A stretch of 41,501 nucleotides of DNA from Octopus bimaculoides (taxonomy: Eukaryota), in NCBI RefSeq assembly GCF_001194135.2, contig NC_068981.1, forward strand, positions 15,655,094 to 15,696,594, written 5' to 3'. Under the pieces are notes generated by a model. It worked only from the letters and a program-made list of their open reading frames with translations, was not told the origin of the DNA and did no database searches. Below, one piece after another: positions 531 through 41,501 of this stretch (position 1 is the stretch's first letter; every line of letters begins with the position of its first letter). The translations under genes were made by a program, and so were the position numbers.

Positions 531-3500
531 TGTATTGTTAGTATTTTGCATTGACAATTATCAGTGATGATCTGTCTCGGTCGCGAGTGGACAGCCATCA
601 TAATCATGTATGCATATATGTATGCTTGCATAAACTTTTAGGACCAATTTAATAATTTTTTTCTGATAATGTATTGGTAAACTAAAAGATCATTGGTTAT
701 TTTTGCTGAGCGGTAGGAGAGAAGTAGGAAAAGAAATTATTGCCAATCGAATTTTCTAATACACAGCTATTCTTGCTTATACAAATAATATGTAAAATGT
801 TATTACAATTGTTATCTAGTGAAGATGATACCTGAAAAGAAAAATGTTTGCTACATAATTACGGCATCAATACCAATGCTACAATGAGGTGTAGACAGCA
901 ATACATTATTTCGATGATGCTTCTATAGTCTTCATAGGACATTCAAGCGCCAGATGCTTCTCATTTGGAACTTGAACACGCTATTTTGAACTATATTATG
1001 TTGCACATACTTAAATCTTCATTACATATGTGGTGTATGTGCGAGTATGTGTGTGTATATGTGTGTATGTGTATATGTGTGTGTGTGCACGTGTGTTCAC
1101 GTGTGTGTCTGTGGTGTGTTTGTATGCAGTTCCTGTAAGATGTTCATATATACTAAACGAATCGATGTCATATACATTCAAGCTCTCAACACATTTTTCT
1201 AATTTCTTTTTTCAGCACACATTTACCAGATAAACTCGACGTAGAGTTTCCTATCTAGATTAAGACTTTACTAATGAGTTGTTCTGCCTGCTATCTATAG
1301 TTAATTGAATTATTTCTAAAGTTGCGTAATATGTTACTTGATTTATAAATATAATTGGGAAGATAGGAAAATCGAGTACAAGTCATGTGTGCTGTATTTC
1401 GGTGTAGATAGTAATAAAGATCTTTAAAAAAACGTAGGAAAACATCTGATAAATGGAGCATAAGAAATAGTAAAGAGCAGGATACTTTTTTCTTACAGCG
1501 TGATATAGATTGCTCCAATTAATTCATTGATTTTTATTAACGGAACAATTGATTTGCATTTAGCGATATTTTTTTATGAGTTCACGGGGGATATATCAAT
1601 ATTATTGGTAATAATCTCAATATAATTTAATGTCGCCAGTTAGAGAAGCCGTAGCGTTATAGGTCTTTAGAAGTGTGTAGATCACAGGAAATGCATTAGT
1701 TGATAAAAATTGCGTCTAATGTAAAGAGTACGGTAGCATAATGATAAGTTTATGGGTGAAAATGATCGTTACTATTACACGGATTTATCAATCTTAAATT
1801 TATGCAGCTAGAATGACTGGAGGAAATTACCAAGAGACATTTGTTTCAACGAATGTTAGAGTGTCTGCTAACAAACTTCATGCAAGAATCAAAAAGAAAG
1901 AAGTCTGATAATGATTAAAATGACTCTTTTATGGAGGGAAAACAACATTACGTAAATTAATAATTTTCGGCAGGAAAGGTAGGGAGAAGACGCTGAAGGT
2001 TTTAACAATTGAAACTAAATAAACATAGAAAGAAAGTTTGCAGTATGTAAAGAGTCTTGTTTTGCAAATACATTTCAAGACTTGTTTTTATTAGACAGAT
2101 GCAATGAATCATACTTTCTTGATCAGTACTTTCCAGTCGTCAGAAGGATGTGATATAATTATTTTGATTGAATACAAATTGGTGAGAGTGAAAACGTAAA
2201 ATAATGAGTCCTGTTAATCTACTCGGGGTTGCCTTTATCATAGACGTATCTGACCACTAATTGTATGACTGCTTTCAGTATTTTTATTATACTTTGGTCA
2301 TTGAAATATCGCCTTTGCCTCCTTGAATTTTGTGCACACGATTATACATTATGTTTAATGCTTAATAAATATTGATATTTCTACTGCCTTACGGGAGCAG
2401 TTTCAATAAATAAAATAGTGTATTTTGGGCTCATTTTATTAAATATGCTTATTCTTATTTTACAATAACACAGTAGAGTTTTGTGGTAGATTTCAAAATT
2501 GGATAAATTCAAATCATTAATAAAAGTTTGACAATAAAAACAGGTAGGATTTAGTTGGCTTCGTTATTTCAAAATAAAAATTGAGTACCGTGGGTTACTG
2601 ATTCTGTAATTTAGCAAGTAGGTTGAGATGTACGATAAGGCTGTAATCCTATTAATCATCTTCAAAGCAAAAATCTCACTAGTTCTGGCCTGACGAAATT
2701 AAAAAGAAAAACCAGACGAAACTAAAAAAAAAAAAAAAACAATTGTTCCTCTTTCTAAGGTTATTTACTTAAGCATTCTATACGCAAACAGTCAGTACTT
2801 TAAACGCATCCTCATATTAGTAGCACCTACACAACATCCCAAAAAGATATAAATAAATACTATTTCACGAGTTAGGTATGTTAAATGAGATTTGTGTTAA
2901 AGATTGTTCCAAGATAATTTCAAGAAAACATTTTCTTTTGGAATTGTTTTTGACTTCTAGATTAAGATACAGTTACCAGAATATCCATTTATCGACTAAA
3001 TTACATGGCGGCGTCGTATTTATTTGTTCACTAATAAATGTCATGCAGATAAATATAGTTGTATAATTGAAATGAAATGGTGAAACATGCTAATACTTAA
3101 ACTTCATTCAGATTTGTTTAATCTCTCCCATTTTATGGCATTATTTAAAGTTGGGTCATTGAATTACTCCTCTGAGGCTAAATACTCTGTCGTTAAAACA
3201 TTCTGGCAATGTTTCAACTTGTGAAATGTACTTGATCTACTTTCAATATCATGACGTATTTTGGCATCCATTCAAAAACAATGAATATGTACCAGAAAAG
3301 CACAGACGGATTGTAAAATGTTAACTCGATTAGAATATCAGTAGTATTTGTCTGAGATGATATCGTCAGGGAATATAACAAAATTAAATAACTCAATATA
3401 TTCTGTATAACTTATTTTTATTGTTACCTTCTTTAAAATTGCCTACATATAACTTCTTGAACAAATATTGCTACAATTCGTTCGATTATATGTTCTGTTA

Positions 3501-3868
3501 TCTTTTTTCAACTTAAGTAGTTGTGTAACGTATTAAATTGTAACTACAAAAAGGAAATAAAAGAAATGACACACAAACTTTTTCACATGTACACAAATAG
3601 ATGGATACATACACAAACATATTCACACATCTATATATGTTTATGTCCATATGAATACATATATGTATGTGTGCGTGTGTTTGAGCGTCTGTGCATCTTT
3701 GCGTTTCTGTGTGTATATGTCTATATGCAGGAATACTAGAAATATACACCATGAAATGACTTTGAAAACGTATGTAGAGTTTTAAATAAGATTTACATAA
3801 ATCTTCTAAAGAACACCAGGTGCATTCTAAATTTCTTTTCTTTCTTTTTCTTTACACAAACACCCTCC

Positions 3869-4066: not shown

Positions 4067-4807
4067 AATTAGGGGAAAAAATATGGAACATGAGAATGGT
4101 ATATATCAATAAGATGACAACATAGAGGAAAGGAGTAAAAAAATTAGGAGATGGAAAGAGAAAAGAAAAAAGAGGCATCAAAGTTCACAGTTCAACTTTC
4201 TGAAGTTATAGAAACCTAATCGTTTAGATCACCTGTGAACTAAACCTCCATACTTTGTATATAANNNNNNNNNNNNNNNNNNNNNNNNNNNNNNNNNNNN
4301 NNNNNNNNNNNNNNNNNNNNNNNNNNNNNNNNNNNNNNNNNNNNNNNNNNNNNNNNNATATATATATATATATATATACATATATATAAGGATTTAGTTT
4401 TCGTAATGAAATAAAAAAAAACCAAGGTTGTGTACATTATAGAACATTTATGAATAGAAGGTCTTACATCTGTTTACAGCATATTTATTATATCGCTTCA
4501 TCTATATACATGGTAGGAGAGAGGCGAAATGCTGGAGGGACTATATGTGTGTGCGTGTGTCTATGGGTGTGTGTATTTACATGCACATACACATGCATAT
4601 TCATATACACACACATATATATAGATTTTTTTAATCTCATTACGAAAAATAAATCCTTATATTCACACGCTGATATATTACATAAGTTGGACCCCTTATT
4701 CGCATAATCACCGAACCTGGAGCTTAACTATGGTCTATCCGTAGCACTTACGCAGCATTACCTAAAACCTCTGGGTCTAATTGACACCACTATCGCCCAT
4801 AACTTCC

Positions 4808-8286: not shown

Positions 8287-9150
8287 CAGGGTACGATGTG
8301 TAAATTGTCACCATTTTATATTTTTAATTTCGCGCATGCGCATTGTCTGATTTAAATTGTGTCGACTACACAGTGTAATAGGGTGAGCTGGGCACCGTCT
8401 CCGAGAAACAGAGCACCATGACGCAATTCAGTCTGCCAGAAATTTGCAAATGACATGCCGTACAGTTTGGCATTCACACTGGGTGCTCCAATACGAACGT
8501 TTCAGAGTGTGTGCGGGAGTGAATCTGAGGACATGTACTGAGAGCGATAAAGATCAAGCACCCAGACGACATCATGGCGTTTGGAGTGGTTACTTGTGAT
8601 AGTGACGTTATGCCTCCAATTATCTTCCCACACGACCTCAGACACAACTACCTGGAGGAGGAAGTGCTGCCCTGGGTCAAAGGGGTGGCTACTGGAAGAC
8701 CCTATCTCTGGCAAAAAGACTCTGCACCACGCCACACCAGCAAGAGAAACCAGTCATGGCTATCAGACAATTTCTGTGACCACATCACTCCTAAAATCTG
8801 GCCAAACAACTCCTCAGATTGCAATATACTTCATTATTATATGTGAGGCGCAGTTGAGCGAGAGACCAACAAATCTCCTTGTAACAACAAAAATGAACTG
8901 AACTGAAGGCAAGAATTATAGCAGTATTCACCAACATAAATATTACCGTCCAGAAAAGTTACAGGAGATTCCGAAGTAGTCTGGAAGCAGTGGGTGAAGC
9001 CGAATGCGATTTTATCGAATAAATTAACTCATGATTATTTCAAGATTTTTTTTATATATATAATTTTGGTAAATATATCTATTAAAATAGAATGTCAGTG
9101 TTAGTTTCATTTTTGCGTAAGTTAGACGACATGCAATTCACCGCAGCCTG
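8287..9150 (+). mobile_element. Internally deleted Tc1/mariner element of the maT (DD37D) group
   Basis: TA dinucleotides flank both ends (8285-8286, 9151-9152). Imperfect TIRs are CAGGGTACGATG... and ...CACCGCAGCCTG, with transposase remnants inside. Confidence 0.9.
8418..9022 (+). pseudogene. maT/DD37D transposase pseudogene (N-terminus fused to C-terminal catalytic region)
   Basis: ATG at 8418 (MTQFSLPEICK*), then a jump near 8545 to KHPDDIMAFGVVTCDSDVMPP...WQKDSAPRHTS...WPNNSSDCNILHYY...EAECDFIE* (TAA 9020-9022). There are 37 residues between the second D and the third catalytic position, which is now H. Stops and frameshifts are present. Confidence 0.9.
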
Positions 9151-9164
9151 TATATGTATGTACG

Positions 9165-9222
<58 letters not shown>

Positions 9223-12200
9223 NNNNNNNNNNNNNNNNNNNNNNNNNNNNNNNNNNNNNNNNNNNNNNNNNNNNNNNNNNNNNNNNNNNNNNNNNNNNNN
9301 NNNNNNNNNNNNNNNNNNNNNNNNNNNNNNNNNNNNNNNNNNNNNNNNNNNNNNNNNNNNNNNNNNNNNNNNNNNNNNNNNNNNNNNNNNNNNNNNNNNN
9401 NNNNNNNNNNNNNNNNNNNNNNNNNNNNNNNNNNNNNNNNNNNNNNNNNNNNNNNNNNNNNNNNNNNNNNNNNNNNNNNNNNNNNNNNNNNNNNNNNNNN
9501 NNNNNNNNNNNNNNNNNNNNNNNNNNNNNNNNNNNNNNNNNNNNNNNNNNNNNNNNNNNNNNNNNNNNNNNNNNNNNNNNNNNNNNNNNNNNNNNNNNNN
9601 NNNNNNNNNNNNNNNNNNNNNNNNNNNNNNNNNNNNNNNNNNNNNNNNNNNNNNNNNNNNNNNNNNNNNNNNNNNNNNNNNNNNNNNNNNNNNNNNNNNN
9701 NNNNNNNNNNNNNNNNNNNNNNNNNNNNNNNNNNNNNNNNNNNNNNNNNNNNNNNNNNNNNNNNNNNNNNNNNNNNNNNNNNNNNNNNNNNNNNNNNNNN
9801 NNNNNNNNNNNNNNNNNNNNNNNNNNNNNNNNNNNNNNNNNNNNNNNNNNNNNNNNNNNNNNNNNNNNNNNNNNNNNNNNNNNNNNNNNNNNNNNNNNNN
9901 NNNNNNNNNNNNNNNNNNNNNNNNNNNNNNNNNNNNNNNNNNNNNNNNNNNNNNNNNNNNNNNNNNNNNNNNNNNNNNNNNNNNNNNNNNNNNNNNNNNN
10001 NNNNNNNNNNNNNNNNNNNNNNNNNNNNNNNNNNNNNNNNNNNNNNNNNNNNNNNNNNNNNNTATATATATATATATATATGTACACATATAAAGGCAAT
10101 GAGAGGGAGAAAGAGCAGCTAAAGCCGAACTCCAACGTGTTGAATGGTCGATGAAGAAGTATGTTTGTTTCCCTATCTTTCATTTTTCAATATACTGAAT
10201 ACCATGGGTTATGAATCGATGTCGATAGATGAATGTATATCTATTTTATAATATTTATAGTAAATAAAACTGAAGATCGGAAAATGTGCTTCTAAATTAA
10301 GTTGGATGTTTTGTTATAGCAACTTGTTACAAAATAATACAAATTATGTTTATATTTATATCACAGTACTTTTGATGAAATTTTGTATCGACGTAGGAAC
10401 AATTTAATAATGAAGAGGTGTCTATATATCATTATATATGTCTATATGTCTATATAATTACTATTTTATTACACCCACAAGAAAATTTAAATAACTGAAT
10501 TTGAAATCGTGGATCGATAATTGCATATACCTATATCTCTTTTAACAAATTCAGGTCTTTAAATTGCAACAACTTCATAGGAATTTAATCGCCTAAACAA
10601 GATCACAACTGATTTTATTCTCACAATTGTTTTGGTACGGCTTGGCATCAAGATTTTTCTGTTTCTACGGTGTACATTCGCCAATATTTCTCTCTGATTT
10701 TATATACAGTAACTAAGTCAAATGTGAATATTATTATAATAAATATAATATTTAACAGGAATGATGCATCTTGAATTATTTGTATAAATGCGTTTAAAGA
10801 GGCACTGTATTTCTTTTCATTAAATGAAAACCTAAATATATTTCGCGTTTTGGAGGGTTATTTTCTCGTAATATGGAGGCATTATTTTTCAATTACATTG
10901 CCTTCAAAGGAATATCACTTTCATTGACATTTCTCGGTCTTCATTAAACAATAAACGGTTTAAAGCAAGAAGGCGTACGAGAACGTTCATACATATAAAT
11001 AGAATTTAATTCAGCTTTCCTATGAAGAGGAGACGTATTCCGAAACAATGTTTCACAGAATTCACTGAGGAAAAGCGAACAAGCTATGTGTGAATGGCTG
11101 CTTGGTGTGACGAAACTAATTAATTTCTATACAATGTCTTCATTTAAATTCTTATTTTTAAATTTCTGTATACATCTGGATAAAATTGTGTGACGATTTC
11201 TGATATGATTGTAAATCGTTATTTTAAGCTACATGTACCAAGATATATTTGATTTTGACATTCAATCTAATGTAAGAATGAGATTTATTAGTTATCAGAT
11301 CTATACAGTAATATTCGTTCCGATATTAAAGTTTGTCAGACACTGAAAGTTTAGTATAGATCAAATCATATAGTCATTCTGAAGCTCCTCTGAAGATCAC
11401 TGGACATACTTGAAAACTGTTTAAGATATAAAATCTCACAATCATTATTATTATTATTGTTGTTATTATTATTCAGCTGAATAGTTTGGTGCAGACAAAG
11501 ACGGAAATAAAAACTAGGTGGATTTCTCTAAAATCTACAAGCTATTTATTAAATAAAGTGCAGTGATATGTAGAAGTAATCACGTGGGAAATTTCTTTGC
11601 ATAATTCACTGCATCTGTCAGGAGAGATAAGACAATGTGCGGATAATAATTGTGTGTGATAAATTATGTAAAAGTATAATATTCATTCTTCTTTCGTTAT
11701 ATAAACGCATAACGATTAAATTTCAAATATTTTATTCCGTAAACGAATCATAATTGTGGCTTTTGAATTACACTGTTAATGATGTACTTCGTCAGATTGC
11801 ATGTAATCATTTTTTTATTGAATTAATTAGTGTAAGTGTACGCTAGCAGTAAAATTAATTTGTTTGTCCTTAAATGTGTTCTGTTAGATTTATTGCTAAA
11901 GTTTCCGGCCTATCATTATTTGGAAATGGCTGCTATTTTCGCCTGTTAATTGTTGATAATAGACTGCGATCGCACTTTCTGAATGAAATAAAACAGTTTC
12001 GAACTCTTTTCCGTCTCAGACACATTGTATTATTTCTAGTTATACACATACGCGATTACTTGCTCTTAATACAAAAAACAAAACAGCATTTTAGTGATAT
12101 ATGAGAATTGTGTAATATTGTGATTCTCCTTTCAAATATATGAAAGTGATAACTTTATTTAAAATGAAAGTATGAGTCATTATTTCAGTTTTGCGATATG

Positions 12201-13504: not shown

Positions 13505-14139
13505 NNNNNNNNNNNNNNNNNNNNNNNNNNNNNNNNNNNNNNNNNNNNNNNNNNNNNNNNNNNNNNNNNNNNNNNNNNNNNNNNNNNNNNNNNNNNNNNN
13601 NNNNNNNNNNNNNNNNNNNNNNNNNNNNNNNGAAATATAACTAATAAATTATTTATATGTGGAATTATTGCGTAGGTCAACCTTTCTGAAATTATCTTTT
13701 GTTGGCGTTAAAGAAAAGAATTGGAAGAATTATTGTCCTGGTTGTTAAATGCAAATATATTTTTTTTCTTCTCTTGCCGGATTCACTAATAGCTATTTGA
13801 AAGTAAATTTATCGTATAATTATGCAGAAAAATATTTGCTTCGTAATTATTTTCATAACCTCGTAGGTCTTTTTTTGAAAAATTATTATTATCGTTGTTG
13901 TTTTTCTCGTCTTATTGTTGTAGTAGTCGTAGCAGTAGTAGCAGTAGTAGTAGCAATATAATGATTGTTGTTATTATCGGTATTAGAATATGTTTGATTT
14001 CGTTTTATGTTAAATTCGAGTCAGTATTGTTTTCCGACATTATAATAATTTTGAAAGAGATTTATTTCAGAAGACTTTTGAATTAAAAAGTTATAAATAT
14101 ATATGAAATAATAAATACATATATATATATATGTGTGTG

Positions 14140-14184
<45 letters not shown>

Positions 14185-14254
14185 NNNNNNNNNNNNNNNN
14201 NNNNNNNNNNNNNNNNNNNNNNNNNNNNNNNNNNNNNNNNNNNNNNNNNNNNNN

Positions 14255-17969: not shown

Positions 17970-19236
17970 NNNNNNNNNNNNNNNNNNNNNNNNNNNNNNN
18001 NNNNNNNNNNNNNNNNNNNNNNNNNNNNNNNNNNNNNNNNNNNNNNNNNNNNNNNNNNNNNNNNNNNNNNNNNNNNNNNNNNNNNNNNNNNNNNNNNNNN
18101 NNNNNNNNNNNNNNNNNNNNNNNNNNNNNNNNNNNNNNNNNNNNNNNNNNNNNNNNNNNNNNNNNNNNNNNNNNNNNNNNNNNNNNNNNNNNNNNNNNNN
18201 NNNNNNNNNNNNNNNNNNNNNNNNNNNNNNNNNNNNNNNNNNNNNNNNNNNNNNNNNNNNNNNNNNNNNNNNNNNNNNNNNNNNNNNNNNNNNNNNNNNN
18301 NNNNNNNNNNNNNNNNNNNNNNNNNNNNNNNNNNNNNNNNNNNNNNNNNNNNNNNNNNNNNNNNNNNNNNNNNNNNNNNNNNNNNNNNNNNNNNNNNNNN
18401 NNNNNNNNNNNNNNNNNNNNNNNNNNNNNNNNNNNNNNNNNNNNNNNNNNNNNNNNNNNNNNNNNNNNNNNNNNNNNNNNNNNNNNNNNNNNNNNNNNNN
18501 NNNNNNNNNNNNNNNNNNNNNNNNNNNNNNNNNNNNNNNNNNNNNNNNNNNNNNNNNNNNNNNNNNNNNNNNNNNNNNNNNNNNNNNNNNNNNNNNNNNN
18601 NNNNNNNNNNNNNNNNNNNNNNNNNNNNNNNNNNNNNNNNNNNNNNNNNNNNNNNNNNNNNNNNNNNNNNNNNNNNNNNNNNNNNNNNNNNNNNNNNNNN
18701 NNNNNNNNNNNNNNNNNNNNNNNNNNNNNNNNNNNNNNNNNNNNNNNNNNNNNNNNNNNNNNNNNNNNNNNNNNNNNNNNNNNNNNNNNNNNNNNNNNNN
18801 NNNNNNNNNNNNNNNNNNNNNNNNNNNNNNNNNNNNNNNNNNNNNNNNNNNNNNNNNNNNNNNNNNNNNNNNNNNNNNNNNNNNNNNNNNNNNNNNNNNN
18901 NNNNNNNNNNNNNNNNATATATTTATTTATATATATATATAACTTTTCAAAGTAAAATCTGTAATCGTTACCAATATAGCATAAGATTTCACCTCAAAGG
19001 TTCATTGACTAGATTCCTTAAGGATCGTTCTCATTGTTTATATTTCCAAAGTTTCAAATTTATACATTTAAAAAAGAGAGAAATTCAACACCGGAGATTT
19101 ATCCATTATTTTTCATTCAACGTAAACATTTCTGTGTTTGACTATATTCAACCATCAATAAGTTAAATATATTAATCGTCTCACACGTCATCAGGAATGA
19201 TTTTCATTAGAATATATATATATTACTTTTTGTCAA

Positions 19237-21621: not shown

Positions 21622-21835
21622 GATTTCAAATTTTTCCACAAGGGCAGCTTGGGAGAGGAGATTAAGTCAATTACATCGACCCCAGTACGTGTCTGGTACT
21701 TATTTAATCGACCTCGAAATGATGAAAGGACAAGTCGACCTCGGGGGAATTTGAACTCAGAACGTAAAGACAGACAAAATACCGCTAAGCATTTCGCCCG
21801 GAGTGCTCATGATTCTATCGACTCGCCGCCTTCCT
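21622..21835 (-). mobile_element. tRNA-derived SINE (same family as 12918-13130) with 15-bp TSD
   Basis: The reverse complement matches the head and body of the 12918 copy. The exact direct repeat TCTTACTGCAATAAT sits at 21607-21621 and 21836-21850. Confidence 0.92.
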
Positions 21836-23125: not shown

Positions 23126-25972
23126 CGCTCATATACAGGATATCTAGTTGAAGTTGTCACAGCTATTCTATGGAGGCATCAATTTCTTGAATGAGTTATA
23201 ACTTAATCATAAAATGGAAAGTAATTATGGCCAGACTTTTACGATACTATGTAGAACATCTTTAATGAACTAGATTTTCAGCGCTGGCGAGTTCAGATCG
23301 CAATGAAAGGATGTGGTAATCTCATTTTAATTTTCTTTCATACTGAAATTAAATATTCTTTCTAGCGGTCTTGCGAATTATATCACTGCTTATATGATTT
23401 AAACGCCTTTAGAATTCTTCACATCTTTAATATAATTCTGTATATCCAATTTGTTGCATAGTGTCTCCGATGAAACAGCCACCTGACAGTCTGAATCGTT
23501 CTATGCAGAATTGGCTTAATGTTCTATGTGGATTAATATGCTACAGTGGATTTTTTCTTTGTTTTTTTTTATGATAATTCATTGAATATCATTATTAAAC
23601 ATAAGTTAATACACATATATCATATATATGTATATATAATAATATTCATATATTATTGTTTTATGATACATTCTGCTGACTTCATCGCTGTTTCTCATAC
23701 TTCCGTCATCGCTAAAATTAAGCATCTGTAAGCACTGATATAGACGTATAAAACCTCTCATTTCAAAACTGCTGGCCTTGTGTTAAAATTTCTTACTAAT
23801 GTAATTGCTAATGTGTACGCTAACTTCATTACTGAACGCATTGTGAACATTAAACATGGTTTAGTTTAACCACCGATTAAACCTAATCATATCTGACATA
23901 TCCTCAAAAGCTTTTCAACTTGATATATTCCATAATTAAATACCATGCAGAGCATCTAGTATCACACGATCCCGTTTATCCTTTTCAGAAAAGACTTTTG
24001 TGCGTGTGATTTTAGAAAAACTTAACTGCTATTTTTAGCAAACTCGAATGCTATGCAATGTATTGCTTTATATTCATTTTCGATTTTACTGAAATTACAT
24101 TGCGTGCCTTATGTGTGCAGCATAGACTTGTATTATTTTCACTATATTTCGTAAATGAGTAAGTGATAGAACACTTGCTTACATATTCTTCTGCATCTGT
24201 TTTAGTTATTCCCAAAGCACCAATTTCTTCCGAATTTTCTGTCTCAGGTACCTCGTTGTTATCTTTATTTTCAAATTGTGTTTCGATAATTTTCCATTCC
24301 TTGTAGAGATGTTAGTGACGCTTCAGTTGGGAAGTATTTTCTTTCCACTCGCCCTTGACAACAATCTTCGTTCGATTTCCCTTGATATCTCTGTCTCTAA
24401 GGTGTGTGTGTANNNNNNNNNNNNNNNNNNNNNNNNNNNNNNNNNNNNNNNNNNNNNNNNNNNNNNNNNTATATATATATATATGTTTTTGCCCAAGAAT
24501 GTTTACACTCCACTTATCTATAATTATTCCATAATTCTCACATTATTTATGTTCTGTGGAATCTCCCGCCCTTCTGTCCTACCGACGGGTATCGTTTGTC
24601 TTGCTTAAGTGTTATATTTGTACATTTCCAACCTTCAAACATATTGCATATCATTTCTATATTGTTTTTCAGAACACGTTGAGATAGTTTCTAATGGTCT
24701 CTTGAACGACAACTGAGACGTTTATATTCCAATCTTAGAGGCATACAATTCTCAACTAGTGATTTGCCGTTTTCTGTTAACATCGTGTACAAATTTTTTT
24801 GTGTGGTATTGACCATGCAACGATTTGCTTTGAAGGGTTTTGTCATTTTTTCGTAGTTCCATAATTTAGATTTTTGCTTTTTCACTTCTGTTTTATATCC
24901 TCCTTATCCTAAAAGGTGTCACTGACCTCGACGTCAGCTGCGTATTTTGTTTGTGTCGCCATGAAGGCAGGAAACAGTTGTCCTTTAGATGTTTAACTAT
25001 TTGTTTTGATATCATTTCATTTATTACAAGTTGCTTTTGTAGGCCCACAATAGAGATGTTATAACAATGATGATCTTGCTCTCCTACAGCAGATATTGCT
25101 TGATAGTTGTCTGCTTGGAGAAATGACTTAATTCCTTGTATTCATAGTAACAATAATCATTCGATGTAGGAGTTTTGATCATGTTTTCTAAAGAGCAGAC
25201 ATTATTATTTGTTTGTATTAATTTTTCTGTCTAGTCTTATTAATTCATTTTGTGTCTAGTTGCGAATATTAATAGTATAAATTACTCCTAGGATAGCTAG
25301 CTTTTCTGGAAGCTTTTTAGCTATTTATTTATATACAATGAGGTCTGTTTATTATAAATTTAATGCGTTTCTAATATTCATTCCTAAACTTTTCTTTCAA
25401 TCGTGCACGGTGTAACCTGAACAGTAGCTGATTCTTAATTATTTTTTATGTCTGTGTTATTTCTAATTATTTTATCTCTGTTTCTTTATGATGTTGTTTT
25501 ACTAATTAACTTTCTAAATTAATTTCTCTCTATTCAATATAACTCTGGTTCATTTTTCTAACTCAGATCAGATATCACATTACCAAAACTGCGTATAGAC
25601 CATAATTGAGTTTGCATCTTTTTCTTATCTACAATTCACAAATTGACAACCTCCTCCACCATCATATTTGGAACGGAGTTCAGCTTGGTTTAATTTTCAC
25701 GCGAAAGGATTTAGGGCCACACAGATAAAAAAAAAACACAATGGGCAGAATATCTCACTTTAAAATATTTATCTTATAATGCAGATAGGGTGAGGTTTAA
25801 TAATTCATTCCTTTTTATTTCTACAATTGATTGGCATTTATTGCTGGATGTTTTAAATTATTTTCTTATATATGGAGCTACATTATTCATCGACTATGCC
25901 AAAATGATAAACGTATGTGAACACCGTTAGAAAGCTTCTTGTAGTCATCCCATCACATACACATACATTTCT

Positions 25973-26206
25973 TATTTCTTTACTGACCACAAGGGACTAC
26001 ACACAGAGGGAACACACAAGGACAGACAAACGGATTAAGTCGATTATGTCGACCTCAGTGCGTAACTGGTACTTAGTTAATCGACCCCGTAAGGATGAAA
26101 GGCAAAGTGGACCTCGGCGGAATTTGAACTCAGAACGTAGCGGCAGACAAAATACCGCTAAGCACTTCGCTCGGCGTGCTAACGTTTCTGCCAGCTCACC
26201 GCTTTG
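25973..26206 (-). mobile_element. tRNA-derived SINE (same head/body, different tail) with 16-bp TSD
   Basis: Head and body match the other copies. The TSD is ATACACATACATTTCT (25957-25972) vs ATACACGTACATTTCT (26207-26222), 15/16 identical. Confidence 0.92.
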
Positions 26207-28766: not shown

Positions 28767-28985
28767 TGTTGGTTTCAAATTTTTGAACAAGGTTACAATG
28801 TTCACAGGAGTGGATAAGTCGATTACGTCGACCTCAGTGCTCGACTGGTCTTCATGTTATCGACTCCGAAGTGATCTAAGGCAAAGTCAACCTCGGTGAA
28901 ATTTGAGCTCAGAACGTAAAGATGAACGAAATGTCGCAAACCAATTTGCCTGGTCTACTAACGACTCTGCCAGTTCACCACCTTG
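28767..28985 (-). mobile_element. tRNA-derived SINE (same family), diverged, with 13-bp TSD
   Basis: Degenerate match to head and body. The exact direct repeat AATATTCCAGTTA sits at 28754-28766 and 28986-28998. Confidence 0.88.
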
Positions 28986-36280: not shown

Positions 36281-37867
36281 CTAGGTGGCGTACCCGGCGT
36301 TGCCCTGGGCTGTATATTAAGTATACCTGTTTAGTTATTACAACATTGACGGATGCACCTCTGAAATGAATGAAAGAAATCATAATGACGGATGTTCCCC
36401 ACGTTGTTTGATTTATTTATCGCAATAGTGAACATGCAGAGTCATGTACCCACACCATTGTCATTGTTTTCCATTTGGACAGTAGGGCGATCTGTAAAAA
36501 ACCGGCAGTAATTGATTTTATTCTCCTTACCACATAACTGCTGACATGTTCTCTTTAGCAGATGGAAAGAGGGACCCTAAATGTGTGACATAAAGAGAAA
36601 TATTATGTTTACCTGCAGTTTCGCTGTATTGCACATACAACATTTTCTGAACAAAAAATTTGACGCGTATCTTGTGCAAAAAGGATGAAAAGTGTAGTAT
36701 CTGTTGCCTACCTCACGATTGGGGGGTACTTAACGGAGAGCATACTGTGAAGATTACGCTAATGAAATAAATAAGATGACAAGAGTATGGTTACCTGATG
36801 TTTTCCTGTTCACAGCATAGCGCAACATCCGTTGTTGTCTTTCCCCTATAGTCTCCGTAGCGCGGGCAGCAGCAGTTGCTGCAGCATCATTTGTAAGTCG
36901 ATCTGTGCATTGTACTGCAGTCTCTGCAACTCGTGCAACAGCAGTTGAGGAAGCATTTCTTATAAGTTGATCTATACGTTGTACTGCAGTCTCTGCAGCT
37001 CGTGCAACAGCAGTTAAGGAAGCATCTCTTGTAAGTCGAACTGCACGTTGTGCTGCAATATCTAAAGCTTGTGAAACAGCACTAGATGTAACATTTCTTG
37101 TTCGGCGTGCTGAACTTTGCTCGTTGCTCTGGGCGCACGTTGCGCAGCAATACGTGCTATCTGATCACTACGCTGCTCTTCACTTTCCCTTTTTTTGCGC
37201 TGAAGCCATCCTAAGTGCATTGAGAGTGTTCCTCCTGGTTGCGTCCTCGGTTGATTCCTTTGCACTCGTACAATTGCTTTTCTTTGCAACATTTGTTTAC
37301 CGACCTATATTGGATCTTCTGCGTCGAGGAATGGTGGAAAATTATCAGTTTACGCAATAGAAAAAGTCCTAAGGGAAAAGCGGTGAACGTATATCACCCA
37401 GAAATAGTTAAATGTAGTTGGCAAAAATGTTAATCAAACAGAAAAAATTAAGTATATTTTAAAATTTTGGGTAAGAGTTTTGAAGTGGCTAGTTTCAGTT
37501 GGAATAATTATATGAAAAAGAGCGCTCACGTGAAAACAGGCAAATCATAACTCGCATATGAATACTGCTGGCAGTACTGTGCAAGCAGTCGATAAGAGCT
37601 CGCCACAGCTGACAAAGTAAAGTATTGATATTTTTCCAGCTGGTTGTGTGTCAAGTTTTATCGCTGGCTCAAGCCAAATCCTAGACGAATTGAGAGTAGT
37701 CTATTTATGTTGGAGGCGCGGATTTTCGAGGAAAAAATTATAAGAAATAGCGTCCTAAGTCAAAGAGAGCCCACATGTCAAATTTGGTGAAATTCGGTTG
37801 AAAAATGTAGGAGTAGAAGCGGTTCACACAACACACAGACAGCCAGTTTGCCTTTTAATATATATAA
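36281..37867 (-). mobile_element. Internally deleted Helitron (~1.6 kb) with both termini
   Basis: The 3' end on the minus strand is the hairpin CCCAGGGCAACGCCGGG (36309-36293), 8 nt, then CTAG (36284-36281) and a host T. The 5' end is TATATATTAAAAGGC-like near 37867, and a RepHel-type N-terminus lies inside. Confidence 0.8.
36780..37332 (-). pseudogene. Helitron RepHel N-terminal fragment with 23-aa tandem repeats
   Basis: CCACC-ATT (start codon mutated, 37332-37330) leads to PRRRRSNIGR*, then RESEEQRSDQIARIAAQR and repeats TAVARAAETAVQRIDQLIRNASS / TAVARVAETAVQCTDRLTNDAAA. The DNA period is 69 bp (36911, 36980, 37049). No Rep or helicase motifs are securely visible. Confidence 0.72.
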
Positions 37868-37933: not shown

Positions 37934-38742
37934 TGTATAGCGAGTGAGAAAGAGAGAGACAAGTATAGGTATAAGGGAATTTTCTAACATACTTTATTAA
38001 TCTCCGTCATCCACTGATTTAGTACCTTAGTGCCATTCCCTTTTCTCACTATCTCAACCATTAATTCCATAGCTTCATACAAACGAGATACAAGACTACA
38101 ATTCTGATACTCCCTACCCCACCTTCCCTTCATCCTCCTACTTTTTCCCTCTACTACTATTACTCTCAACTTGTGTCTTTATTAACCCCGACTCTTGAAC
38201 TATTTTTACTCCTCTCACCATTCCCTATCTAACGACACCCCCGCTAGTTCCGAACTCTAATACACTTAGCTCTCGACATTGGATCATTCCATCTTTGAAG
38301 TTAGGTCCTTCAACATCTCAAATGTAAGATATCTTCCCTGAAGACGGAGGCTCCCATATAGAAACATTATTATGGACCACCAAGCCCGCAGGAACGGTTA
38401 TTGGATTTGTATTACTTTTCCACCACCCCTTTAATTCTCTATATCCTATCAAATCTCTGTAAGTTGGATCATTTTATATGTATACATATATACATATTTT
38501 GTATTTCAAGTTTTTAATACACTTTATATATTGATCTGTATACTTCGCTAATCCCTACATTTACATCCCAGGTTCACATCCCTATATGTTTACACATCAA
38601 GTCTAAATCTCTTGAGCACTACTAAGTCTATTCTATACGGAGAATTTTTGGATCTCATCTATGAACTATATATGTAACATACGGTAGAATTATAAACGGC
38701 ATATTTTAGTAATTTCTCCCCAGACGGAAAAAATTATGAACA

Positions 38743-38785
38743 ACCTTAATCGATTTTCGAACCTTATTGGGTTCTCATCAGAGGC
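38743..38785 (-). ncRNA. Minimal type I hammerhead ribozyme with intact catalytic core
   Basis: Minus strand reads GCCT-CTGATGA-GAACC(caataa)GGTTC-GAAAA(tcga)TTA-AGGT. Core at 38781-38775, perfect 5-bp stem II, GAAA at 38758-38755, palindromic stem III AATCGATT, UUA cleavage triplet (predicted cut 38747/38746), and stem I of 3 Watson-Crick pairs plus 1 G-U. Confidence 0.85.
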
Positions 38786-38831
38786 GTCCACATCATTCTG
38801 ACAATCTCCAGAGAAACAAGCAGCCAATCTG

Positions 38832-38839
38832 TTTATATA
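38832..38839 (-). promoter_or_regulatory. Candidate TATA box upstream of the hammerhead
   Basis: TATATAAA on the minus strand, about 50 nt 5' of the ribozyme core. The AT-rich background weakens this evidence. Confidence 0.3.
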
Positions 38840-38859
38840 CTCAACAAGTGCAGCAGTTA

Positions 38860-39637
38860 CTCTATGAAGGCGTCCCTAATTTGCTTCGGGAAATGCTGTA
38901 GAGCTTCGTCGGCATCCAACCACTGAGCGGAGCGTCGCCAATTGTAAAAAATCCACTTTTCATCGCAAGTCACAATCCGGTCGAGAAATGGGTCGTTCTT
39001 GTTGCACAAAAGAAGGGAAGATNNNNNNNNNNNNNNNNNNNNNNNNNNNNNNNNNNNNNNNNNNNNNNNNNNNNNNNNNNNNNNNNNNNNNNNNNNNNNN
39101 NNNNNNNNNNNNNNNNNNNNNNNNNNNNNNNNNNNNNNNNNNNNNNNNNNNNNNNNNNNCGTTACGTCTAATTCAGAAGCAAGTTCTCGAATAGTTGTGC
39201 GTGGATTGGCTTCCACTAAGGCTCTTAGTTGATCGTTGTCAACATCGGATGGCCGACTACTAAACTTATCATCTTCAAGACTCTCGTCACCGCTACGAAA
39301 TTTCTTGAAACACCATTGTGCTGTACGTTCATTAGTGGTTCCGAGGCCAAATGCATCGTTGATTCGTTGATATTGTCAGCTGTTTCAGCAGCTTCTCGGC
39401 CTAACTTGAACTGAAATAGAAAATTTTGCGAATTTGCTTTTTGTCCATGTTGTATTCAACGTTCAGGAAAAAATGGCCTAACTATTCAAAAAAAAAAAGA
39501 ATAACACGATTAGATAGAGCGAAAAACGGGCTTTAAAATGATATATAAAGTCAATGTAATTTAACGGAAATTAATTTGAATTTACATCATTTAAAACCAA
39601 AATTTAAAATTCCGCAATAACTATTTTGACAACCTAA
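38860..39637 (-). mobile_element. mariner element relic (5' TIR plus truncated transposase pseudogene)
   Basis: TA (39638-39639) plus TTAGGTTGTCAAAATAGTTATTGCGG TIR. ATG at 39448 gives MDKKQIRKIF...FKLGREAAETA...FRSGDESLED...VEANPRTTIRELASELDV...FLDRIVTCDEKWIFY...WLD...HFPK. The second and third catalytic D regions and the 3' TIR are missing, so the left boundary is uncertain (38860-38884). An N-gap lies inside. Confidence 0.92.
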
Positions 39638-39680
39638 TAGATTGTTCCGAATATTATGAATATTAAAACTTTCTGTTACA

Positions 39681-40067
39681 CGTATAACCAACTATTCTTT
39701 CACTGAGTGATAGCGTCCATTTATTGAGTAGATGTTATAACATCTCATGTTTAATGCATTACGATATTATAGTCGCTTTATAAAAATAAAGGCAACAGAA
39801 TTGTTGCCTTGCTTTTTATAAATCAAAACCTAAGGCCTTCTTTGCTAGCCGTTAAAATTATCGTTTCACAGATGGTTACCCGTATAACCATTTATTCTTT
39901 CACTGCATTATAGCATCTATTCATTGAGTAGATATTATGTGTCATGTTTAATGCATTACGATATTATAATCGCTTTATAAAAATCAAGGCAACATAAATG
40001 TTGCCTTGGTTTTTATATATTAAAATATAAGGCTTTCTTTGCTAGCCGTTAAAATTATCGTTTCACA
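39681..40067. repeat. Two-copy 200-bp tandem repeat, each unit with a long hairpin
   Basis: CGTATAACCA at 39681 and 39881. Both copies end GCTAGCCGTTAAAATTATCGTTTCACA. The inverted repeats are at 39779-39820 and 39976-40017. Confidence 0.9.
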
Positions 40068-40775
40068 CAACCGAGATTACACATACACCATTTGTGTTTG
40101 TATTTTATTTATTATCTGAATATTCAACCATAGCTACGATTTTTGAGTTGCCCCACATTTGTTTCCATCATTCTATTTATGTAACAATTTTTTTTATTAT
40201 ATTAGAATCTGTTGAGTTCCTATCGTGGAATCACTACAAACACTGTCGATCTTCTAGTTATTTAAATAAACTGAAGACTAAATAGCGATGATTTTATATA
40301 CACAAAATATTGACTATCCAGAGAACAATATACCCAGCATATTTTGTATAATAGTTAGGCTAGATAAATTGAGTTCTCAAACAATTCGCTAGCATAAGAA
40401 ATGAAAATACACCTCACTAAGTAATCATATATAAGGGGTTATTTTCATAGATTACTTTCATCTCCAGGGACTTCTTCAGTTCATTCACTTTTCCGCCTTA
40501 TTGAAAGCAGTATATTATCAAAGATACTGATGTGAAGAGAAACTTATACTTGTTCGTTCTAAAAGCTTTGTTAGAGTAAATATTCGGTCTATCATTCTGT
40601 AGATATTGTGACAGCTTGTTTGCTCCCTCGATGGTTAAACTTCGAGATAATTCAATAGCTTGTCATTTTGTTCTGTATAAACACCTTCCTAGAGTATCCT
40701 GATATAGATGTTCTTTCACCGACTTTCCAAAACGGGAAGAATGGCACTGAAAGAGATACTATCTCTCCAAAATGA

Positions 40776-41271
40776 TTAAATCATATGTCTCTTTTGAAGA
40801 TTGAATTAAATGATCAATTCCCTAGGGTTAGTGGGGGGTTGTATAGAGACGACTGCCTGTCATATGTTAGGAATTGCTCAAACCAGGAACTACAGAGAAT
40901 TAAGGGTAGGCTGGCTAGATTTTTCAGCAGAATGGGGATGGGTATAGTTTACGAAAATGATGTCTCAGTAGCAAATTTCCTAGACGTAACATTAGATATT
41001 AAGAATAAAACATATAGACCATACCACAAACCCCTAACAAACCTACAGTATATAAGTAAATCAAGTAACCATCCTAGGGCTATAATAGAGAATCTAGTAA
41101 AAAATATATCTTTAAGACTCTCCAAATTATCTGCTAACAATAGGGTATTTAATAATGAAGCTAATTTATATAATCCAGCACTAAATAAGGCAGGATATAA
41201 AGAAAGGGTCTCCTATATTGAAAATGGTAGCAAAGGAATTGAAACAACTGACAATAATAATAATAATAATG

Positions 41272-41313
<42 letters not shown>

Positions 41314-41501
41314 GGAATAAACACAAAGTAAATAAACTAAATAAACCAAAGTACCCTCATAAAAACAACATAGGTAACTTAAAATTCTTTAAAAACAATA
41401 TTAATAACCATGAGGATAATAATAAGGATAATAAAATCTGGCTCATAATCCCATTTGGGAGGAATATCAAGAGTAATCTGATAGCTAAGTTTAGAGAAGT
41501 G
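40776..41501 (+). CDS. Penelope-like element reverse transcriptase, partial (5'-truncated, open to the window end)
   Basis: Hand translation gives 242 stop-free codons after TGA 40773-40775: ...QFPRVSGGLYRDDCL (YRDD at 40842-40853)...NFLDVTLD...YRPYHKP...YISKSSNHP...NISLRLSKLS...ALNKAGY...N6-D-N13...KIWLIIPF. The ORF track misses it because it has no stop codon. Confidence 0.9.

Follow-up and report, generated by a model that had tools for sequence, protein, structure and literature searches.

A type I hammerhead motif with a palindromic helix III beside a broken mariner in Octopus bimaculoides, the probable remnant of a truncated retroelement insertion

Near the right-hand end of the window, by which we mean the whole 41,501-nt stretch of Octopus bimaculoides DNA that was analysed, lie a candidate hammerhead ribozyme motif and the 5' half of a mariner transposon, both of them minus-strand features, and, on the plus strand, a reverse transcriptase (RT) fragment of the kind found in Penelope-like elements (PLEs). 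The coordinates of these features and of the individual parts of the hammerhead are collected in Table 1.

The extent of the mariner was determined by DNA alignment with three full-length relatives, from a Logan contig, an ENA contig and O. sinensis, all of which align to 39637..38884 and part abruptly from the window after ...CCCGAAGC, at ~38882-38884. The window copy is 77-85% identical to these relatives and broken: an 8-bp insertion near 39365 disrupts its frame, and the N gap 39023-39159 lies inside the element. Positions 724-1276 of the three full-length mariners had no match anywhere in 38000-38883, and the mariner 3' half and 3' ITR are absent from the entire window, including the part beyond the putative insertion. 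A look-alike of an ITR, 'TTAAGGTTGT', which directly follows the cleavage site, was considered as a second ITR and rejected. The stretch between the mariner breakpoint and the hammerhead is presumed to be the 5'-truncated body of the hammerhead-bearing element. The window stems from a draft scaffold with seven N runs that add up to 2271 N (4265-4357, 9223-10062, 13505-13631, 14185-14254, 17970-18916, 24413-24469, and 39023-39159) and are often bordered by TA/TG microsatellites, and we therefore allow for misassembly at junctions such as 38882.

Table 1. Features of the hammerhead locus, in window coordinates.
Feature	Coordinates	Strand	Basis
Mariner (SETMAR/Hsmar1-like), 5' half, transposase residues ~1-178	38884..39637	-	homology, DNA alignment
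Mariner 5' ITR	39637..39612	-	
Non-mariner stretch of ~90 nt, mariner breakpoint to hammerhead	38793..38881	-	no match in mariners or in the rest of the window
Helix I, 5' strand UGUGGACGCCU (U2.1 = 38782)	38782..38792	-	ViennaRNA MFE and hammerhead-constrained fold
Catalytic box C3 U4 G5 A6 U7 G8 A9 (CUGAUGA)	38775..38781	-	direct read
Helix II, GAACC/GGUUC	38774..38770 with 38763..38759	-	direct read, scan and fold
Loop 2, CAAUAA	38769..38764	-	direct read
G12 A13 A14	38756..38758	-	direct read
Helix III, A15.1-U16.1 and A15.2-U16.2, closed by UCGA, perfect 8-nt palindrome AAUCGAUU	38748..38755	-	direct read
Cleavage triplet UUA, and position 1.1 after it	A17, 38747; position 1.1, 38746	-	direct read
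Predicted cleavage site, 3' of A17 (38747), with 5'-OH on A1.1 (38746)	38746..38747	-	hammerhead numbering
Helix I, 3' strand AGGUUGUUCAUA, with a bulged U (38743 or 38742)	38735..38746	-	folding
Penelope-like RT fragment (YRDD...FLDV...YRPYHKP...SNHP)	40776..41501	+	homologues and motifs recognised by eye

Comparison with other loci confirms that the window is octopus DNA: it has 11 repeat HSPs in common with the O. sinensis locus L010 and nine with a second O. bimaculoides locus (L012). Beyond the mariner 5' ITR, ~37 nt (39638-39674) are also similar to the flank of the O. sinensis mariner copy, and adjoining this flank there are two tandem repeats of ~200 bp (39675-40067) that are 84-90% identical, each of which holds a 20-nt hairpin (TATAAAAAT.AAGGCAACA / TGTTGCCTT..TTTTTATA) without a hammerhead core. 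On the minus strand at 36757-37164, a 136-aa open frame of 23-residue repeats includes a 69-nt tandem repeat (36850-37056); its similarity to STPR (PF21107) is sub-threshold (E=3.8e-5, 24.4 bits with a cut-off of 27), and the frame is possibly an exon or a DNA-binding domain carried by a transposable element. A dispersed repeat of ~173 nt occurs at 21660-21832, 26033-26205, and 28812-28984 with 72-83% identity and is also present in L010; it is likely a SINE-type family. Finally, 8369-8857 and 9075-9215 have 76-79% DNA identity to a stretch of L010, and the plus-strand ORF 8529-8843 within this region is transposase-like (...VTCDSDV...WQKDSAPRHTS...), with no Pfam match.

Read directly, the minus strand at 38785..38743 is GCCU CUGAUGA GAACC CAAUAA GGUUC GAA A-A-UCGA-U-U A AGGU, and the full motif at 38793..38735 is 5'-A UGUGGACGCCU CUGAUGA GAACC CAAUAA GGUUC GAA AAUCGAUU A AGGUUGUUCAUA-3'. 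Every position of the conserved type I core (C3-A9, G12-A14, A15.1-U16.1, and H17) is present within 38781..38747. The three-helix layout is complete as well, with an open-ended helix I of 11 bp plus a bulge, a perfect helix II of 5 bp with a 6-nt loop, and a helix III of 2 bp with a 4-nt loop. The closing pair of helix II is G10.1-C11.1 (G38774-C38759). In helix I, 38792..38782 pairs with 38746..38735 over 11 bp, both in the ViennaRNA MFE structure and in the constrained fold, and its sole irregularity is the bulged U, which is separated from the core by 4 bp. The RF00163 consensus has CAAAUA at loop 2, to which the CAAUAA of the candidate is similar. A contact of loop 2 with a loop or bulge of helix I is required for fast cleavage by hammerheads at physiological Mg2+. 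As helix I of the candidate is formed without a loop 1, the usual contact between loops 1 and 2 is not evident. The sequence-only reading that drew attention to this locus had listed the core elements, a 5-bp stem II, a 2-bp stem III inside a palindrome, and the UUA triplet, and all of these are indeed present and in order. The stem I of 4 bp that it described, however, is just the inner part of a helix that folding extends to 11 bp and a bulged U. By its sequence, the motif is a perfect and genuine type I hammerhead.

We scanned both strands of the 41.5-kb window with a descriptor of our own, and 38785..38743 was the single match, even with loose settings (at least 3 bp in helix I, at least 3 bp in helix II, and at least 1 bp in helix III). 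Among the CTGANGA boxes of the window, only the one in the candidate has compatible stems, and neither the scan nor a box search nor a covariance model found a second hammerhead in the window.

Transcription of the minus strand would allow 38792..38735 to fold into a three-way junction in which, going by the family, the 2'-OH of A17 would attack its own 3' phosphate and leave a 5'-OH at 38746 together with a 2',3'-cyclic phosphate. A monomer would probably be a poor ribozyme, with a 2-bp helix III that is too weak and a core that is predicted to be locked into a competing pairing. In the ViennaRNA MFE structure of the monomeric 59-mer (-17.0 kcal/mol), U4-U7 pair with the 3' portion of the palindrome, which buries the core, whereas the hammerhead fold of the monomer reaches only -10.1 kcal/mol. 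Through the palindrome AAUCGAUU, two copies could share an 8-bp helix III, and this double hammerhead would be the active form. The predicted homodimer has exactly this form, its two copies being joined by an intermolecular helix III of 8 bp as in the classical double hammerhead; its MFE is -36.5 kcal/mol, compared with -34.0 kcal/mol for two separate monomers, and the palindrome duplex alone has -6.1 kcal/mol. The earlier remark that hammerheads of this kind are reported to cleave best as dimers is matched by the predicted folds, with an inactive, trapped monomer and a double-hammerhead dimer. The same monomer-off, dimer-on logic applies to newt and axolotl repeats and has been proposed for PLE hammerheads (PMC4209133, PMC7229834). 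Single motifs of this design show little or no cleavage, and PLE dimers are weak in vitro (PMC4209133, PMC7229834). As there is one copy at the locus, there is no partner in cis for a dimer, and cleavage would need transcripts of sister copies. On the folding model, cis activity of this copy is unlikely.

The sequence-only reading had proposed Rfam Hammerhead_1 (RF00163) as a check, and on this point it found no support. No hammerhead match was obtained for the whole window at the gathering score, and with E<=10 no hammerhead family appeared in a 501-nt slice or even in an 81-nt slice. As a control, the motif of comparison locus L011, described below, was recognised by RF00163 with 23 bits (E=0.0014), below the gathering score of 34 bits. 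In comparison to the RF00163 consensus (aUccag CUGAcGA GUCC CAAAUA GGAC GAA ACGc..gCGU C cuggAu), the candidate has a helix II that is one base pair longer, A17 where the model has C17, mismatches to helix I of the model (positions 5-6), as the bulge puts the pairing out of register there, and AU-rich helix III pairs where those of the model are GC-rich. The failure of Rfam weakens the view that the motif is a member of RF00163 as curated, but not the presence of every hammerhead element.

Among known systems, the candidate shares the core, the topology, and G10.1-C11.1 with the metazoan type I hammerheads of retrozymes and SINE-like elements from Schistosoma, coral, and mussel (RF00163; PMC7229834). 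In invertebrate type I hammerheads, helix III consists of a 2-bp stem with a palindromic tetraloop (PMC7229834), and the candidate has the 2-bp palindromic helix III of the retrozyme type, a near-consensus loop 2, and low-GC surroundings. It differs from this type in a helix II of 5 bp instead of 4, in A17 instead of C17, and in a near-continuous helix I of 11 bp with a bulged U, where the retrozyme type has 6 bp and then loop 1. Unlike non-LTR retrozymes, it is not surrounded by a tandem array of 150-450 bp and is the lone hammerhead of the window. With the minimal hammerheads of PLEs (PMC4209133), it has in common G10.1-C11.1, the palindromic 15.2-16.2/loop 3 region, and the single, dispersed occurrence, and a PLE-like RT lies in the same window. 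PLE minimal hammerheads are usually single motifs from truncated copies and typically have an extra nucleotide after A9, a helix II of 6-8 bp, and a helix I of 4-5 bp (PMC4209133), whereas the candidate has no extra nucleotide between A9 and 10.1, a helix II of 5 bp, and a helix I of 11 bp. Also in contrast to PLE hammerheads, it is not accompanied by RT and GIY-YIG on the same strand; ~100 nt upstream there is the mariner instead. However, a heavily 5'-truncated PLE copy, like the one at comparison locus L008 (see below), would look like the candidate, which is thus compatible with PLE descent. The satellite 2 hammerhead of newts and salamanders resembles the candidate in its weak helix III, its palindromic loop, and a dimer with an extended, shared helix III, but the amphibian motifs are arranged in huge tandem arrays that provide a partner in cis, whereas the octopus copy is alone. 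The term "minimal", used for the motif before, fits only in part, as the extra nucleotide after A9 and the long helix II of PLE minimal hammerheads are missing. Altogether, the build of the candidate looks more like the canonical retrozyme type than the "minimal" hammerheads of PLEs.

Relatives of the candidate were looked for at several levels. The interval 37950-38890 (940 nt) has neither a second copy nor a direct repeat elsewhere in the window, and within the window the hammerhead strand carries no tandem partner, flanking repeat, pseudo-LTR, or PLE ORF. The peptides of three ORFs spanning the motif had no match among 5.8e9 proteins, and an exact-sequence lookup of ten window ORFs in a contig index gave no match either. 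In JGI metagenomes, the pattern CTGATGAG...CGAAAATCGATTA was matched four times, which is about the chance number estimated by hand, and none of the four has the stems. A covariance model built from the single sequence recovered no sequence but its own from the ~194 kb of loci that were sampled, with or without filters; ~118 kb of this sample are octopus DNA, namely the window and the loci L010 (O. sinensis) and L012 (O. bimaculoides), both of which were reached through mariner homologues. No tRNA that could represent a SINE head was found in the window or in L011, where ARAGORN was used. In the literature searched, we found no description of a hammerhead from a cephalopod.

PLEs are a major order of transposable elements in octopus (PMC13282606). 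The RT fragment of the window comprises 242 open codons with an internal expanded (AAT)n tract and continues past the window end; it lies 2 kb from the hammerhead, on the opposite strand. Pfam gave no match for the fragment itself, and its assignment to PLEs thus rests on the homologues and on motifs recognised by eye. At the homologue loci, an RT (RVT_1, E=1.3e-4), a Cys-rich CxC linker, and a weak GIY-YIG-like ORF (E=0.53) come one after the other, an order that reads as a Penelope-like layout. Within the window, a bare box on the minus strand (40456-40479; CUGAAGA A GUCCCUGGAGAU GAAA) has no convincing helices I-III. Upstream of the plus-strand PLE fragment by 300 nt and inverted to it, the box occupies a position like that of an inverted PLE 3' end at L008, and it is probably a chance occurrence or a decayed relic.

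Hammerhead-like motifs were found at PLE 3' ends of the comparison loci, 34-40 nt before (TA)n, at +9445 in L001 and at +5712 in L007, the latter with the 10-nt palindrome AUAAAUUUAU. At L008, a 165-nt 5'-truncated and inverted PLE 3' end with a hammerhead-like motif is located on the minus strand at ~3360-3610, just upstream of a plus-strand PLE, and a related 3' end occurs at 9365-9533 of L001; the point at which the L008 and L001 copies diverge (...TTACCGTCACG) was taken as the PLE 3' terminus. An inverted, truncated PLE copy upstream of a PLE is an arrangement that was described by Craig et al. (PMC8557442). The geometry of L008 is that of the window, with a minus-strand hammerhead and a plus-strand PLE RT to its right, except that in the window 2 kb of mariner and 200-bp tandem repeat intervene. 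The L008/L001 motif has a U-U at the base of helix II, and the motifs of L001/L008 and L007 are of another design, with a different helix II base and no sequence similarity to the candidate. Judged by sequence, they are analogies to the candidate and not relatives.

A cleaner analogue than these motifs, and a clear type I hammerhead, was seen in L011 (ENA assembly ERZ21867824), where the minus strand at 8769..8722 is CCACA CUGAGGA GUUC-UGAUA-GAAC GAA ACAGAUCUGU C UGUGG. Like the candidate, it has type I architecture and a palindromic helix III (10 nt in L011) and is solitary; a TA-rich tract comes after it, and a full-length mariner belonging to the family of the window mariner is 1 kb away. 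It differs from the candidate in its stem sequences, in C17, in having no similarity in the flanks, and in being seen by RF00163. On the minus strand of L011 (8722-8870), the ~100 nt before the hammerhead hold a tRNA-like T-arm box (GGGTTTCGATCCC), and the arrangement is reminiscent, by analogy, of SINE-like hammerhead carriers. The source of L011 is probably not Octopus.

In our view, the motif is probably the remnant of a 5'-truncated insertion that carried a hammerhead, either the 3' end of a PLE or a retrozyme/SINE-type non-autonomous derivative, and the locus is probably a structurally intact yet idle relic. What we infer from the data is that the motif stems from a retroelement, that it requires a dimer, and that it is a relic. 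The inverted, truncated PLE 3' end of L008, with its motif, provides a precedent for such a remnant. The origin from a PLE or retrozyme that had been suggested before is favoured by the retroelement-type design and by the PLE-like RT 2 kb away, while the pseudo-LTR, the array, and the same-strand PLE ORF that would accompany such an element are missing. We also count against the remnant that Rfam is silent although RF00163 gives 23 bits to the comparable motif of L011, that the extra nucleotide after A9 and a helix II of 6-8 bp are lacking, that no relative was found in the 194 kb sampled and no PLE ORF or repeat on the strand of the motif, that the PLE relatives (L001/L008 and L007) carry differently built motifs, and that the mariner 3' half is missing beyond the putative insertion.

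A more active role, which is the stronger half of what the sequence-only reading had proposed, would follow if the motif came from an octopus family of PLEs or retrozymes that is transcribed at present, and whose RNA would self-cleave by pairing in trans with sister transcripts and may circularise. The core and the helices are free of mutations next to a mariner that is broken and has drifted to 77-85% identity, the dimer fold is the predicted MFE structure, O. vulgaris has 336 PLE insertions with <=2% divergence (PMC13282606), and invertebrate retrozymes are highly expressed (PMC7229834). We nevertheless consider a living element unlikely, as the copy is single, with neither a tandem partner nor a recognisable pseudo-LTR bearing a promoter, no sister copy was found in the ~118 kb of octopus DNA, and PLE hammerheads cleave poorly in vitro, even as dimers (PMC4209133). 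Quite unlikely, in our estimate, is a more specific scenario in which the motif marks an undescribed family of non-autonomous octopus retroelements, retrozyme/SINE-like and mobilised by PLEs, that would still be transcribed and would yield self-cleaved or circular RNAs; a related thought is that the abrupt mariner junction at ~38882, with both sequences on one strand, could be a chimera formed by template switching of a PLE RT. Abundant retrozyme circRNAs are known from other invertebrates, and transposons with neural expression are unusually numerous in octopus genomes.

The ribozyme could instead have been kept for a role in the host, for example in the processing of an intron or UTR of a nearby gene, for which the intronic hammerheads of amniotes would be the model. 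That a perfect motif has persisted amid decayed transposon surroundings would fit such an exaptation. It is distinctly improbable, however, as no gene model or conserved exon could be linked to the motif, the nearest ORF-like feature (the STPR-like repeats) is 1.6 kb away, and the palindromic, dimer-dependent helix III is a design of mobile elements.

As bare CUGANGA...GAAA boxes are frequent (11 in the window), AT-rich genomic sequence might satisfy a hammerhead descriptor by accident. First-order Markov sequence (20 Mb) with the composition of the window gave 1.2 matches per window for the loose descriptor with long loops and none for the strict one. Analytically, and with compact loops, the features listed in the sequence-only reading are expected 5.8e-5 times per window or ~3.8 times per 2.7-Gb genome; with about four such matches per genome, these features alone would fail in a genome-wide scan. 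The silence of the Rfam models and the lack of relatives in the peptide search and in the sampled loci would also fit an accidental match. G10.1-C11.1 and the palindromic helix III, however, stood outside the descriptor, and when they are included together with the 11-bp helix I, the analytic expectation falls to 1.3e-9 per window or ~8e-5 per genome, values that are optimistic by perhaps 10-100 fold because these three features were noticed post hoc. Loop 2 is, moreover, near the canonical CAAAUA. G10.1-C11.1 and the palindromic 15.2-16.2 pair have been used before to argue against a random origin of PLE hammerheads (Cervera & de la Pena, PMC4209133). Real type I hammerheads number in the thousands per invertebrate genome (PMC4209133, PMC7229834), which, in a PLE-rich animal such as Octopus, shifts the prior odds strongly towards a real hammerhead. 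Even after the post hoc discount, a chance origin of the motif is very unlikely.

We give virtually no credence to the view that the motif is part of the mariner, as a chance motif in the region encoding the transposase C-terminus or within an internally deleted copy: although it lies on the strand of the mariner ORF, only ~100 nt downstream, and a weak tblastn match recurred in which DENPIRFENRLR aligned with the DEKWILYDNRRR region (E about 1-5), the DNA alignment with the three full-length mariners, which match nothing downstream of the breakpoint, the lack of a 3' ITR in the window, and the real DEKW region already at ~38950 refute such an origin and show the peptide similarity to be noise.

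The hammerhead of the window is thus best regarded as the probable remnant of a truncated retroelement insertion. Hammerheads of PLEs and retrozymes are known from cnidarians to amphibians, with thousands of copies per genome, and another copy, from an octopus, lengthens the list of taxa without introducing a new principle. A practical reminder is that a sequence-perfect hammerhead motif goes unreported by the hammerhead models of Rfam. If it is true that the copy represents an active cephalopod family, the finding would be of modest importance.
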